DNA from: Zancudomyces culisetae HAW-14-8
Lineage: Eukaryota > Fungi > Kickxellomycota
Assembly (NCBI GenBank): GCA_052426225.1
Contig: JBNJNM010000011.1
Location: forward strand, 3,162,001 to 3,226,000
Length of the DNA: 64,000 nt
Direction: 5' to 3'
The position numbers were made by a program, and so were the translations under genes. Numbering within the stretch: the stretch's first letter is position 1; each line of letters starts with the position of its first letter. Below the pieces are notes generated by a model that made no database searches, was not told the origin of the DNA, and saw only the letters and a program-made list of their open reading frames with translations. Shown here one piece after another: positions 38,726 through 46,162 of this stretch.

Positions 38726-40070
38726 TTTTGCGTATATTTCATGTATTTTTTCTTTTCTTTTCTTTCTTGGTTTAGGTTTTTTTTTTGGTTTAGGTTTTTT
38801 TTTTGGTTTAGGTTTTTTTTTGGTTTTGTTTTTTGTTTTGGTTTCTTTGAGTATTGTTACTAATTAATAGTAAGGTTGGTTTTGCTGCTGTAGTTTTTGA
38901 TGTAATTGGAAAATCTGTAGTTTAAAAATATTAATTCTATAAATATATTTCTTGAGTATACAACATAGTAATATATATCTTGTGGAAAACAAAAAGGTTG
39001 GTATTGTCGTTGCTATTACTATTTCTATTTGGTGTTTTGTTATTTATTGCACAGTAAACGGTACAAGAATAAAAGAGAACAAAAACAGGAATATGAAAAG
39101 GTGCACATCTATTGGGTAAAATATCATTATTTTTTTTTTTTAGTGCTAATGGACCAGCAGCATATTCTTCCAGCTACATGTTGAACATCACATGAATCCA
39201 AACATTTTTTTCTTTTTTCCTTTTTCTTTTTTTTTCAAAAAAAATTCAATGTATTTGATTTTCTAATCAATGGTGTATACGAAATTGACTCTGGTACACC
39301 CTCCTAGCTCACTTATCTTTTACCACTCTCTCCTTTCACCCTCCCCTGCTTTCTTCCATGTTATACCTAACCATGATTAGTAATCGTAGAGCCCAATAGA
39401 CAAATTTGAACCCAATTAACTAATTGTTTTTCTCTAATGGGTTAAAGAGCGAGTTAAATGATGCATGAAAAGAGTTGCATAAACATATTATTTGAGGAAG
39501 ATCATTGCCACTTTGTCTTATGTAGATGGGAGAAGAGAAACAAGAGGGTGGTGGACGGGGGGAATAAATTATGGTTCCAGAAAATAATTATTTGCATGAC
39601 TAGTGCTTTATTCCCCCCCCCCCCTTTTATCATAAAGGTTAGTTAGGAATAGGGTCATGAGATCGATGGTCGGAATATAAGAACGATGAAAAAAGACGGT
39701 TTTTTTTCAGCTACCGGATTTTATATATATTTGATTTCAGAGTTTTAAACGATTTAGACTAATTAGGTTAACGGTTTTCCCAAACCATGTTAATCAAAGG
39801 AACATAATAATCCTATTATTTACAGCCAATATATTTTGCTAAAAACAGCTTGGTATCATATTAATAATGTTAATAGTATCGAAAATACTCTAAAAGTATC
39901 GCTATAACCAAGAAGAGTAAAGATGGTGTTTAGATTAGTAATCACAACTCCCTCCTTTGTTTGTTTTTATCAGTTTTCATGTATTCGAAAATGGATTTTT
40001 TTTATTCCAAGAGCATCAAAAAATAAAAACCACTTTACAAAATAGACTACTAAAAATAAAAATAAAAAGT

Positions 40071-40161
40071 GGTGTATGTGTATGTGTATGTGTATGTGTA
40101 GGTGTAGGTGTATGTGTAGGTGTATGTGTATGTGTAGGTGTAGGTGTAGGTGTAAGTGTAG
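40071..40161. repeat. Compound hexamer microsatellite (GTGTAT/GTGTAG)n
   Basis: About 15 hexamer units read directly. Confidence 0.85.
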
Positions 40162-40725
40162 GGGGCTTTTAGTAGATAATGTACTTCATCAGGGATGTAA
40201 TCAGTTCATTTAAACTATTTTGATTTTTATCCCCTATCTACTACTAACCTAGTCATTATAGATGTTGGATGGAGGGGATGGAGGGTGAGAAGAAGTGTGG
40301 TTTTCAATAAGGGGTCATTATGATGAATCTGGATTTCGGCTTTCACACTATTCATGAATTCCAAACCATACACAAAACATCTCTTCCTCCTCCTAATTGC
40401 TTAATAAAAAAAAGATGAATGATATTAAAGAAGCATAATCAATTGCTAGAGCACGAATTTACATAAGTATTCTCCTATATAAGAAATTCGGAGACAAAAT
40501 TAATAAGCTGGTATGCAGTTATGATTGAGTAGTGTTCTATTGGGTACAAAAAATAATATTTGGTAAAAACCCAACTTCAACTACATCATTGGTTAGTACT
40601 TAATAACAGTTCGAAGGAGATAAAGGAGGAGAGCGAAGTAAAAGTTAGGTCATAGACAACGCGAATGCATTTTTTTCTTGCATGGGTTAGTTTTACGCAC
40701 TTTTCACTGCACACGAAACGTTTCA

Positions 40726-40781: not shown

Positions 40782-42258
40782 CACGAGTGCAAATATGATA
40801 CCAGGTAATACGCTAAAGGAAAAAATGGTAATGAAGCGTTTATAAGAATTTGCATGCCGAAAAAGGAAATAAGCCACGAATCTAATCTACAAAGCGAAAA
40901 TCCATTGCAAAAAGGCAAATGTGCTGAAAATGTTGAAAATGCCGAAAAATAACAGTCAAGCCCCTGGGGAGGAGGGGGAGGGGGCGGACCGTTTGGGTTT
41001 TTCGTTGATATTTTTTTTTTGAGTGTTATATACTAACAGATTATTGCTTGGGTAAAATTGTACTTTATACTTAATTTCCTTCAACTTGGATCAATGGTTT
41101 AGATGAACGAATTTGTTGGAGAAACTATCCGTGTTGATCCCAAAAGGCACCAAAAAAAAAAGTGATCACCGATTATAAGCACTTTGAGGTAATCAAACTT
41201 CCGTTTATCTTTTCACAGATCAAAGTGAACAAATCCGGATAGAACGGAAATAGTATGTATAAAGAGAGGGTTTGCAGAAAATTAAGCCATAATGATAAAA
41301 TAGATTTCACATGTATTATAAACTTGAGCAATTAATAGATGGAAAAAAATTTTTTTTAAATTAAAATGAGTGGAAGAGAAAAAACATTGGCGAATTTCTG
41401 CCCATTCACTGTTTTTTTATTGACTAACTAGTGCGTAGAATAAATTGTATTCAATCCCTTGCCACAAAAAAAAAAATACCGATGGTTTATGACATATATA
41501 TTTTTATTCGTCCACCAACCAACGTTTATTTTAAACTGGACACGCAAAGAGATTACAATAGTATAGGTATAAAAATTTATCGATATTTATAACAAAAAAT
41601 ATAAAAAAGGGCCAAAATGGTGATGAAAGCACTAATTATTTTTTCACTAGATTGATATCAAATACACAAAATTCCAATCATTTTTTTATAATTATAAAAG
41701 CTTTTTCCTTTATTTGGAGATTGCGGGTCGATTTACGGGTTAATTTCACATAGTACATGAGAATACCAAAGTATTTATATAATTAAATGCGATATTAGAA
41801 TTAGAAAAAAGCAAGAATATAATTTAACAAGAAAAAGTCTAGAAAGCAAAAGGGAATTGTAACGCGAACAGAGTAAACGTGGGACCAAGCAGATATTATT
41901 CATTTGATAACGGTAAAAGCATAGTCAATTTGATGCTTAATTTAGATTGAACCTCTTTTAAAAGCTTGCGAATAAGAAAATATTGATATATAAACCAAAG
42001 GTTTATGCACAAAAGCGAGGTTATACAGCATAATATCACGACTAATACCACTAAACCCAACAACTAAACTTTTCAGTATCGATACAATAATAAAATCAAC
42101 AAAGTTTTTAATTTTTTTTTGAATTAGCAATAGTTTTCACAGGGAAAGAGAAAAAAAACGCGGTATTATAAATTTTAGGAGCAGTGTCATATGAGTAGAC
42201 ACTAAGAAAGCAAATTCAAATAGAGAAATAGAAAGAAAAAAAGAAATGAAAATATAAG

Positions 42259-45200
42259 ATGGCACCAAAATACTTTGCACCAGTATGGAAACATTTCGAG
42301 AGAAAGGAACCAACAGGAAAATCTAAACATCATAGAGCAGGATGTATATACTGTAAGTATGAGCTGAGTGGGCAACCAGAGAGGATGAAGGCGCATTTGC
42401 GGAAATGTCCAAAAATATCAGAAAGTGTTAAAAAACACTTTTATTCAGAGGACAATGAAAATGAGGGAATAGAGATAATAGATTCGGGAAATGGGGGTAT
42501 TATGAATGGGAATTTGCGAATCAGGAAAAAAGAGATAGGAAGGGGGTATGGTAGTGGTAGCGGGACTGGTGTAGCTGGGGGAGAGGATGAAGGAGAAGAG
42601 GATGAAGAGGAGGAGGAGGGAGAGGAAGGAGGTGATGTGCAGCAAGAAAAGACTCGAAATGTTGACGGTGGCAGCGGGGGTAGATATACGAGTAACGACA
42701 CAGACAGTGATATGGATGATAGTAATCAAAGTAAGGGATTGAGGGGTGATGTCTTGGGTCAAGGCAGTCGAAGGGCCAGCGAAAGTATTGATCAGGAAAA
42801 GAGAACTGAAAACGAAATAGAACTAGAAAAGGTATACGAATATTTAAAGTCGGGAGTATCGGTTGGCGGAAAAGTTGATCAAAGCAGTAGTGCGAATAAA
42901 GAAAACGCAAACGAAGCCGAAAAGAATGATATGCAAATTACTGCAGGTAACTGGGGGAAAAATATAAATACAGAAAAGTATAATATAGTAGCGGGTTATG
43001 AGTATAGAAACGAAGATAGTGTATCCGAAAGCAGTAAAGAGGAAAGAGTGGGACAGAAAAGGAAGGCGAGTAAAGTTTTACCAGGAGAGGCAGGAATATG
43101 GAAAATGCGAATGAATATGTATACTAGCGGCAAGGAGGAAAGAATGAGAGCGGGTAAGGGGCGTGGCGAGTATGAAGAGGCGAGGATAGGGTATTTTATT
43201 GACGGAGATAATAGACAGCGGAAGGGGCTCTACATACCAAACATTACAGACCCGAGGCATTACAGCAAAAAGAGACCAGGGTACCAGAATGTAGCAAGCT
43301 ATTACAGTAAAGTGAAACCAGAGCGAAGTAAACTCACATCAATCTCAACGATAGTTTCACCGCATCCAATCATTAAAGAGGCAATTTCAAAAGTGCCAGA
43401 GCCAATATTGAATAATTATGTAGGATGTGGGTTTCCAATTCCACTGGGGATAGAGGGTTTGAAAGTGTTGGATCTAGGGTGTGGGAGTGGAAGAGATTGT
43501 TATGTGGTAAGTAAACTGGTAGGATCACTTGGGGAGGTGTGTGGGATAGACAATGATGCGGAACAGATAGGCATTGCATCAGAATATATTGATATGTATT
43601 CAAAGGAGTTAGGATATAAACCAAACCTCAAATTCAAACATGGGTACATAGAGTTTCTGACCAGAGCAGGAATCTTTCCAGAGTCGATAGATCTTTGTAT
43701 TTCAAACAACGCAGTGAATCTTTCACCTGACAAGGAGTTAGTATTTAAGTCTGTATTTGAGATATTGCGAGAGGGTGGCGAGTTTTACTTTTCTGATATA
43801 TATGCAGACCGTCGGCTGCCACCACATTTAAGAACACATCCAACATTGGTGAGTGAAAATCTGGGTGGTGCACTGTATATCCAAGACTTTATGAAGTTGA
43901 TTGAAAGTGTTGGGTTTGCAGATCCACGGCAAGTGGGGCCAAAAGTGCCAGTACAAATCCAAACCACAGAGCTCAGTGATCTGGTGCGGTCAACCAAGTT
44001 TTTTGCGATTACCTACCGGTTATTTAAATTCTCAAAACCCGGAAACGTTCTGGAACGGTCTCGCGAAGATTATGGGCAGCTGGCGATATACAAGGGAACA
44101 ATAGATGGGCAACGCTCGTTTTATAGATTAGACAACGATTACAGTTTTGAGGCCAACAGACCGACCCTTGTAGACGGCAACTCTGCCGTAATGCTGGCCG
44201 AGTCGTGGCTGCAAAAGCACTTTGAGGTGCGAGGCGACCGTGCCCACCACTTTGGAGCGTTTCGCAACCAGAATGCATACTTGGCGTCTGTCGATGCAAA
44301 CAGACCTGCCAAACACGACTGGGAAACCGAAAACGAAAACTACCGCAACATCAACTCTCTTTTGCCCTCTGCAAAACCTTCAACGTTTTTCAACAGCTTT
44401 CATACCTTCCACAATTTTAATGAGGGTAATAGTGGTGGAGGTGGTATTGGTGTTGGTAACAACCCTGATTTGTTCTTGTTTTCGGATTTACCGCCTTTGT
44501 TTGATGCCTCCAACCTTTATTCTTTGGCTCCTATAAATTATAGCGCTATCAATAGTACTTCTACTCCTAACCTCGCTTCCAATTCTACCACCAATATTAA
44601 TCTCACTACCAATACAAATGCTAATACCAATACAAATGTCAACACTAATGCTAATACAAACACAATTCCTAATACAAACTCAAACTCTAACACAAACTCT
44701 AACCCAAACGCAAATAATATTTCTGTTCCTTCATCAAATTATTCTCAAAACATTCCTCCCACAAATCCTATTGCATCAGCAGCCGCAATACCAGGCAGAA
44801 ATTTTGTTGAAACCTCTTCTCATACCGATCTTTTTGGCCTTAATACATCTCATCCAACCAACTCCAGCTATTCCAACCCCACTCCATTATTTACTACAAA
44901 AAACACCACCGTTGCTGATCAGTTTTATCACCAAAGTATCAACAACAAGCAATTGAATGTGTCTACAAATTCAGCTGCAACACCAGCCTCAACTAGTTTG
45001 CATCTCTTGGGTTCTTATCTTGACTCGTCTACGTCTGTGACTAACAGGACTAACTCTGCCAACGCTACCAACACTGCTACCATTACTGCTGCAACCACTG
45101 CTACTTTTACAGTCGGCTCAGCAAAGACCACTCCACTGACTTCTCATCTACCTTTAGTTAACCCTACCTCGACATCTATTTCATCCACCCATAATCTTTC

Positions 45201-45480
45201 CCACAATACAGCCACTACCAGCTTTAACAATACCCACACCAATGTTATTAACAATACTGATATGTTTGATTTGTCACAGAAGCCAAAGGTTCATACCACC
45301 AGCAGCACCCCTATTATTGCATCTGCCACTACAATCATCAATGATCCAAAATCATTAGGAAATATGAATAATCTTGGTAATAATACAAGTGCTTTTCCTG
45401 CTAGATCCACCTTTGAACACTATAAAAAGAAATATCCTTTGTTTTCTATAAAAACTTCCAAACTCGACACTAGTAAATAG
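42259..45480 (+). CDS. BED zinc finger fused to an AS3MT/ArsM-like SAM-dependent methyltransferase domain with core Cys replaced by Asn, plus an N/S/T-rich tail
   Basis: aa 1-53 PVWKHF..CIYC..RMKAHLRKC (BED). About aa 345-670 is colinear with AS3MT: YVGCG, VLDLGCGSGRDCY, GYIE, LSPDK, GGEFYFSDIY, LGGALY, TYRLFK. Confidence 0.9.
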   Translation: MAPKYFAPVWKHFERKEPTGKSKHHRAGCIYCKYELSGQPERMKAHLRKCPKISESVKKHFYSEDNENEGIEIIDSGNGGIMNGNLRIRKKEIGRGYGSGSGTGVAGGEDEGEEDEEEEEGEEGGDVQQEKTRNVDGGSGGRYTSNDTDSDMDDSNQSKGLRGDVLGQGSRRASESIDQEKRTENEIELEKVYEYLKSGVSVGGKVDQSSSANKENANEAEKNDMQITAGNWGKNINTEKYNIVAGYEYRNEDSVSESSKEERVGQKRKASKVLPGEAGIWKMRMNMYTSGKEERMRAGKGRGEYEEARIGYFIDGDNRQRKGLYIPNITDPRHYSKKRPGYQNVASYYSKVKPERSKLTSISTIVSPHPIIKEAISKVPEPILNNYVGCGFPIPLGIEGLKVLDLGCGSGRDCYVVSKLVGSLGEVCGIDNDAEQIGIASEYIDMYSKELGYKPNLKFKHGYIEFLTRAGIFPESIDLCISNNAVNLSPDKELVFKSVFEILREGGEFYFSDIYADRRLPPHLRTHPTLVSENLGGALYIQDFMKLIESVGFADPRQVGPKVPVQIQTTELSDLVRSTKFFAITYRLFKFSKPGNVLERSREDYGQLAIYKGTIDGQRSFYRLDNDYSFEANRPTLVDGNSAVMLAESWLQKHFEVRGDRAHHFGAFRNQNAYLASVDANRPAKHDWETENENYRNINSLLPSAKPSTFFNSFHTFHNFNEGNSGGGGIGVGNNPDLFLFSDLPPLFDASNLYSLAPINYSAINSTSTPNLASNSTTNINLTTNTNANTNTNVNTNANTNTIPNTNSNSNTNSNPNANNISVPSSNYSQNIPPTNPIASAAAIPGRNFVETSSHTDLFGLNTSHPTNSSYSNPTPLFTTKNTTVADQFYHQSINNKQLNVSTNSAATPASTSLHLLGSYLDSSTSVTNRTNSANATNTATITAATTATFTVGSAKTTPLTSHLPLVNPTSTSISSTHNLSHNTATTSFNNTHTNVINNTDMFDLSQKPKVHTTSSTPIIASATTIINDPKSLGNMNNLGNNTSAFPARSTFEHYKKKYPLFSIKTSKLDTSK

Positions 45481-46162
45481 CCCCATTAGCCGGTCTTTTT
45501 TTTTCCCCTGTATAGTATAACCAGCAATCCCAGGCTGATTTTGGGTTTAATAAATATTACATTCCTATTGATGTCTGGCTAGACAAGAAGCATGTTTGTT
45601 TGTTATTTTTTTCTTTCTTTTTTGTATCGTTTAATGTTGTTAGTGTGATTTATTATTTTAGAACAAGCCATTTTAAATACCACAAACTTGGATAAAATTT
45701 CCAATAGCTCCCCACACTCCATCCCACTTCTACCATTTCTCTGATCCCTCACACTGTCAACTGTTTTATTATTTTTTACAAGAAAAAACTAGGTATATTT
45801 TGACGTGTTTGTGGAAAAAATATATCTTGCCCCGCCAAATCTGCAACATCTAAATCAAGAAAATTGTTGAAAAAAAAAATTTTCTTGCTCTTGATTTTGT
45901 TTATCAATTAGCGAAAAGGGCCGCAAAAGGGCAATACAATTTTATTATTCGATATTGAGCTACCAATATACGAATAATAAAAAAAATACTAAACGAGCAA
46001 GGGAGGCTGATAAAAAAAAAACAAGCGAGTAAACAAGAACAAGGATCGGAATTATAATTAGAATTAGGATCCACGACTTTCAACACATTTATATACATAT
46101 CCACAATCTCCAAAGCGAACTAGAAATCACATAAACTAGATATTATATCCGAGAGTTCAAAA

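Follow-up and report, generated by a model that had tools for sequence, protein, structure and literature searches.

A BED zinc finger joined to an arsenite methyltransferase fold in Zancudomyces culisetae and related fungi: a candidate DNA-binding regulator

The 64,000-nucleotide stretch of the Zancudomyces culisetae HAW-14-8 genome analyzed here (contig JBNJNM010000011.1; hereafter the window, numbered from its first letter) contains a gene that raises the question of why a BED-type zinc finger and an arsenite methyltransferase (AS3MT/ArsM) fold should be encoded in one protein, and what such a protein could do. The open reading frame (ORF) at positions 42259–45480 of the forward strand encodes 1,073 amino acids with no internal stop codons, as reported in an initial annotation made from the letters alone. 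That annotation also described an N-terminal BED finger with the pattern W-x2-F, CxxC, H-x3-C, an acidic, glycine-rich linker with a QKRK patch resembling a nuclear localization signal (NLS), and a tail of about 350 residues rich in Asn, Ser and Thr; all of these were recovered (Table 1). The gene proved to belong to a conserved fungal family in which the arsenic-binding cysteines have been lost.

When long proteins were searched with the enzyme domain, about 30 relatives with 54–68% identity came up, every one of them belonging to Smittium, Furculomyces, Coemansia, Kickxella, or Mycoemilia, whereas canonical AS3MTs were mostly lower, at about 45–54% identity to the query domain. About 25 full-length BED–AS3MT orthologues were found in Harpellales, Kickxellales, and Mycoemilia; all models with an intact N-terminus start with the same BED finger, and the fusion was conserved in all sampled Harpellales and Kickxellales. 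No members from Dimargaritales or other fungi were among the listed matches. The ESM Atlas groups the family in a single Zoopagomycota cluster of 65 members under the automatic name "arsenite methyltransferase family," and NCBI and UniRef label its proteins "arsenite methyltransferase." Absence of the fusion from related genomes, which the initial annotation had considered as a point against its proposal, was looked for, and the fusion was present across orders; a recent chance read-through was rejected on the same grounds. The ratio of nonsynonymous to synonymous substitution rates (dN/dS) for the enzyme domain was 0.03–0.07 in most pairs and 0.43 in one GC-rich pair, and for the finger it was 0.05–0.16 where dS was measurable. 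Judging by these values, both domains are under strong purifying selection. Literature searches, in which subscription journals were thinly covered, turned up no description of the BED + AS3MT architecture, in line with the earlier remark that no characterized protein is known to have it, or of AS3MT-like genes in these fungi.

In Z. culisetae, scans of the 27-Mb genome found the BED finger once and the AS3MT-like domain once. The draft assembly of another strain has the same open frame, with 11 codons differing. An older annotation of the species divided the locus, via a frameshifting 61-nt intron, into OMH84959.1 (243 amino acids), which is a fragment of the fusion ORF with 97% identity, and a 429-amino-acid 3′ gene; it split one gene. 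At the local composition, the chance of the 285-codon linker lacking a stop is about 4e-10, and the remaining two frames contain 16 and 36 stops; in the tail region, the alternative frames contain 8 and 40. In Smittium simulii and Coemansia sp. RSA 2050 one exon encodes the uninterrupted fusion, while six other species have a phase-1 intron 12–13 residues past a conserved Trp motif of the linker, conserved in position and phase (intron positions were taken from each species' annotated proteins). A candidate in-frame intron was found in the query as well (Table 1), and the fusion remains intact whether or not it is spliced. The old annotation's donor used with its 61-nt acceptor (43154–43214) would yield a frameshifted finger-only isoform of about 324 amino acids. 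GC skew changes from +0.35 to −0.28 inside this gene (positions 42001–46000), the 5′ half being purine-rich and the 3′ half C/A-rich.

The enzyme part is a well-preserved AS3MT domain in terms of fold. Pfam Methyltransf_31 matched residues 400–547, and the top solved relative in a phmmer search was Chlamydomonas CrArsM (5EVJ; E = 2.8e-93), followed by CmArsM and human AS3MT. An AlphaFold2 model of residues 336–680 (predicted local distance difference test 90.7, predicted template-modeling [TM] score 0.90) matched 5EVJ in Foldseek with an E-value of 2.4e-41 and TM-scores of 0.84 (query) and 0.95 (target), and AS3MT entries ranked far above other methyltransferases. The domain has the three-part AS3MT class I methyltransferase fold and shares it, along with the S-adenosylmethionine (SAM) motifs, the Cys72 equivalent, and about 48%–50% identity, with CrArsM (5EVJ), CmArsM (4FR0/4KW7), and human AS3MT (8XT7). 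Unlike the stand-alone enzymes, it is embedded in a protein with a BED finger and long disordered arms, and it is more basic. The putative SAM-contact residues, assigned from motif conservation, are D405, G407, G409, G411, D413, D431, E465, and N483, invariant in 35/35 family members. The net charge of the domain averages +3.2 (standard deviation 2.4) in the family versus −9.5 (standard deviation 4.2) in canonical enzymes, the shift of about 13 charges lying mainly in the C-terminal half, and family-specific arginines occupy positions 566, 573, 621, 623, 653, and 658. Residues 602 and 639 (window positions 44062–44175) are Cys-Cys in canonical AS3MTs (223 sequences) and Arg-Asp in the family (34 sequences) and in CmArsM; this covariation suggests that a salt bridge may take the place of a disulfide or contact.

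The arsenic chemistry is another matter. By alignment to CmArsM, residues C44, C72, C174, and C224 correspond to S363, C390, N484, and N534 of the query, which retains the Cys72 equivalent alone; neither the metalloid pair Cys174/Cys224 nor the N-terminal redox pair Cys44/Cys72 is complete. Counted over sequences that are related and do not represent independent events, the Cys174 position holds Cys in 0/35 family members (N in 27, S in 7, K in 1) versus 288/296 other homologues, and the Cys44 position in 0/33 versus 269/276. The Cys72 equivalent is kept in 34/35 (281/289 elsewhere), with Phe in S. megazygosporum, and the Cys224 equivalent in 25/35 (268/294 elsewhere), being lost in the query and nine others. 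Thus, loss at Cys174 is family-wide and loss at Cys224 sporadic. No substitute His occurs at the lost cysteine positions in the family; the former acceptor positions are unfixed (N/S/K at 484, C/S/N at 534), and the lid segment is variable. The metalloid site is made up of Cys174 and Cys224, and all four of the cysteines must be present for the first methylation of As(III) (PMC6138428); a survey of 343 ArsMs found C72, C174, and C224 in every one (PMC5552862). Judged by its residues, the query does not belong to the catalytically competent AS3MT class, whose full set of defining cysteines it lacks. The "full AS3MT/ArsM-like domain" of the initial annotation therefore stands for the fold and not for the chemistry. 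Because the Cys174 equivalent is lost throughout the family, arsenic is unlikely to be a ligand or substrate, and the idea that the domain was repurposed gains strength. Cys480 was considered as a replacement catalytic cysteine and rejected, since the stand-alone sister enzymes also have it. Eight unrelated AS3MT homologues, one of them from Pythium oligandrum, likewise lack the Cys174 equivalent, so copies that appear disarmed also arose outside the family.

The finger has the BED residues W10-x2-F13, C29xxC32, and H46-x3-C50. Residues 8–50 matched Pfam zf-BED (PF02892) by a narrow margin (21.4 bits versus a cut-off of 20.6), and the match reached 28.1 bits in the genome scan. Across 25 orthologues, which are 58–74% identical to the query here, 28/65 columns are invariant, the zinc ligands included. 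The nearest ESM Atlas clusters are BED fingers from plants and Mucoromycota; a finger-only sequence search returned only the BED–AS3MT family, with no outside protein sharing words, and no match was found in the PDB. The model shows the expected helix, hairpin, CxxC, and helix, with weak fold matches to ZBED2 (Z 4.0) and ZBED1 (Z 3.7) that are equalled by those to the Serrate and TUT4 fingers. The protein shares the N-terminal W..CxxC..H-x3-C finger with hAT transposases and with domesticated ZBED, DREF, and DAYSLEEPER proteins, and, like such domesticated BED proteins, it is single copy, under purifying selection, and without terminal repeats. Unlike them, it has no transposase core or hAT dimerization domain, and the partner of its finger is a small-molecule methyltransferase fold.

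The arms around the enzyme domain cannot be aligned among orthologues apart from three short motifs. The linker retains KR(R/K)xS...G[AV][EQ]GLxGLxW in Harpellales, Kickxellales, and Mycoemilia, degenerate yet alignable in the query; an acidic WE[TL][ED] motif follows the enzyme domain; and most orthologues in the two orders carry FSI[KS] in their tails. We take the tail motif to be reminiscent of PxIxIT-type beta-strand docking motifs, and the basic patch of the linker presumably recalls a protein kinase A site inside an NLS.

The origin of the family was addressed with a quick maximum-likelihood tree, which was midpoint-rooted and supported by the Shimodaira–Hasegawa-like approximate likelihood ratio test (SH-aLRT) only. 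The fused domains grouped in a single clade (SH-aLRT 100) whose stem measured 0.71 changes per site and whose inner branches were mostly short. Its sister (SH-aLRT 89) comprised two stand-alone AS3MTs that retain Cys174, one from Spiromyces aspiralis and the other from Coemansia sp. RSA 1821; in S. aspiralis, a fragment belonging to the fused family is present too. This fits, with moderate support, a scenario in which the gene was duplicated in the common ancestor of Harpellales and Kickxellales, the copy captured a BED finger and lost its arsenic chemistry, and stasis followed. The stand-alone gene of Coemansia sp. RSA 1821 lies head-to-head with a second methyltransferase gene and has Gly at the Cys224 position; in the annotation it is continuous with an AAA ATPase, probably through the merging of gene models. 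Fusion to radical-SAM ArsS is seen in many bacterial ArsM domains, and a MIP channel and a glycosyltransferase are each the partner in one case.

The two readings first proposed, a SAM- or ligand-sensing regulator and a DNA-tethered methyltransferase, still appear to be the best. As a tentative preference, held short of conviction, we regard the protein as a nuclear regulator that binds DNA, is specific to this lineage, and arose by the joining of a duplicated AS3MT gene to a BED finger of the hAT type, with an AS3MT module that binds SAM or S-adenosylhomocysteine (SAH). The finger would bind a promoter motif, and the basic patch of the linker would drive nuclear import. The AS3MT module could hold SAM or SAH without arsenic turnover, and cofactor occupancy may alter DNA binding or the exposure of the acidic and FSI[KS] motifs, which would recruit co-regulators. 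The net effect would be a one-component transcription factor reading SAM. In ArsM, the N-terminal/Cys72 loop shifts upon SAM binding (PMC4211708). The variable acceptor positions and lid are as expected of a ligand-binding rather than a catalytic pocket; the loss of the Cys174 and Cys44 equivalents beside invariant SAM motifs, the low dN/dS values, the long stem followed by short branches, the conserved NLS-like and tail motifs, and the basic-shifted domain also argue for such a regulator.

Several observations weigh against it. The invariant SAM motifs would be equally compatible with an active enzyme, and known pseudo-methyltransferases often do not bind SAM. The query has N432 and D433 beside motif II, where every other sequence has M/T, and its domain is the least shifted towards basic, with a net charge of −2. 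The relatedness of the sequences limits what the cysteine counts can say, and the match to the BED fold is not strong enough for telling DNA-binding from RNA-binding fingers.

An active methyltransferase delivered by the BED finger to a new acceptor (chromatin or a partner protein, nucleic acid, or its own Cys72 equivalent) is unlikely, though it has to be taken seriously. Invariant SAM motifs in a domain that is highly conserved in its entirety, a more basic surface, and family-specific arginines would all suit such an enzyme. The near-universal Cys72 equivalent would suit it too, since the cysteines that AS3MT is able to methylate in itself include this one (PMC9013690), but several of the lost cysteines were required for automethylation of the mouse enzyme (PMC9013690), and S. 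megazygosporum has replaced this residue with Phe. We prefer cofactor sensing to a new, tethered enzyme on the ground that no new catalytic residues have become fixed at the former acceptor positions, which is a modest argument.

It is improbable that the AS3MT module is a mere scaffold or interaction surface, with the cofactor structural or absent, and/or that the finger binds RNA or protein. The RNA-binding fingers of Serrate/ARS2, TUT4, and matrin-like proteins match the finger model as well as ZBED does (Z about 4), and a truncated human AS3MT isoform works via protein contacts (PMC11952104); however, sequence searches place the finger in BED, and the SAM motifs are invariant across orders.

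Less probable again is retained arsenic biology, in the form of a metalloid-sensing transcription factor or a low-cysteine arsenite methyltransferase. AS3MT ancestry, the status of the gene as the sole AS3MT-like locus found in the Z. culisetae genome, and retention of both the Cys72 and Cys224 equivalents in 25/35 members are in its favor, as is the Thermus thermophilus enzyme TtArsM, which methylates arsenite with one Cys and two His (PMC8649762). Like the query, TtArsM is an arsenite methyltransferase-type protein with a single Cys, and it has a role of its own in transcription control through binding of TtSmtB (PMC8649762); unlike the query, it belongs to a distant family, uses two His, still methylates arsenite, and has no fused DNA-binding domain. 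The query and several other members have one of the four cysteines and no His substitutes, a two-Cys Bacillus enzyme reportedly needs both of its C-terminal-type cysteines, 145 and 195 (PMC6950371), and Kickxellales such as S. aspiralis and Coemansia sp. RSA 1821 have retained an AS3MT with Cys174 as a gene apart.

An artefact, in which two adjacent genes are misread as one or the main transcript splices the BED part away from the enzyme, is very improbable: although the older annotation divided the locus and the two domains come together in six orthologue models only through an intron, the frame is open in two strains, single-exon fusions exist, intron position and phase and the linker and C-terminal motifs are conserved, and the enzyme exon of Mycoemilia and of S. 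mucronatum lacks an upstream start codon from which a separate whole enzyme could be made, its first Met lying 9 residues before motif I.

The surroundings of the gene are those of ordinary fungal housekeeping genes. No transposase ORF was present among the neighboring genes, and no clean pair of terminal inverted repeats was found near the ORF, only low-complexity inverted matches, in agreement with the initial annotation, which had seen neither a DDE domain nor such repeats nearby. A Pfam search of the 1,073-residue protein found no DDE transposase core and no hAT dimerization domain; genome scans with PF04937 and PF05699 were blank, but so were the control scans, and these blanks carry no weight. 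A live hAT element was rejected since the gene is single copy and lacks the transposase core, the dimerization domain, and clean terminal inverted repeats. A functional tie to the divergent calcipressin gene was also rejected, as that neighbor is not conserved. Downstream lies RPL22 in Zancudomyces and Furculomyces and a CTLH-domain gene in Coemansia and Mycoemilia, into which one annotated orthologue model apparently runs through. The 3.5-kb upstream intergenic region has no ORF longer than 71 amino acids and contains a TGTATG/TGTAGG hexamer microsatellite (40059–40172), near which the draft of the other strain has an assembly gap.

Table 1. Features of the BED–AS3MT-like gene, in window positions
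Feature	Position	Strand	Details
Whole ORF, BED–AS3MT-like fusion	42259..45480	+	1,073 aa; single copy in the genome; open frame shared with the draft of a second strain
BED-type C2HC zinc finger	42259..42444	+	aa 1-62; W10, C29, C32, H46, C50; net charge +10
Acidic/Gly-rich linker	42445..43263	+	aa 63-335; net charge -18; length and sequence differ among orthologues
Linker motif, basic NLS-like patch then G..G..W	43054..43101	+	aa 266-281; QKRK at aa 266
Candidate in-frame 96-nt phase-1 intron (GTAAGG...TACAG)	43154..43249	+	donor shared with the old annotation; six orthologues have a phase-1 intron 12-13 aa past the W motif
AS3MT/ArsM-fold domain	43279..44283	+	about aa 341-675; SAM motif I DLGCGSGRD (43471), motif II D431, IE (E465), N483
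Acidic WE[TL][ED] motif	44317..44334	+	directly after the AS3MT-like domain; conserved in the family
N/S/T-rich low-complexity tail	44359..45477	+	aa 701-1073; 16% T, 16% N, 14% S
Tail motif PLFSIK (family xxFSI[KS]x[SN])	45436..45453	+	10 residues from the C-terminus of the query

The family joins two known themes, the domestication of BED fingers and the use of methyltransferase folds as regulators. SAMTOR/BMT2, fungal LaeA, mitochondrial TFB/Mtf1, and bacterial MetJ, whose fold is unrelated to that of methyltransferases, all use a methyltransferase fold or SAM binding in regulation, as proposed here; to our knowledge, none of them has a BED finger of its own or descends from AS3MT. It is possible, though we put it forward with reserve, that a transposon finger and an arsenic enzyme were combined and fixed across Kickxellomycotina as a one-component eukaryotic transcription factor reading SAM or SAH on DNA, a functional analogue of MetJ, or as a DNA-targeted methyltransferase of a new substrate class. 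The current database label would wrongly credit these fungi, including Z. culisetae with its sole AS3MT-like locus, with arsenic methylation. The family would offer a clean case of a detoxification enzyme that was duplicated, disarmed, joined to a transposon-type finger, and kept by strong selection both in free-living Kickxellales and in Harpellales of the insect gut. We know of few eukaryotic proteins that by themselves link methyl-donor status to transcription, and if SAM is indeed read on DNA, this one would provide a direct route from the former to the latter.

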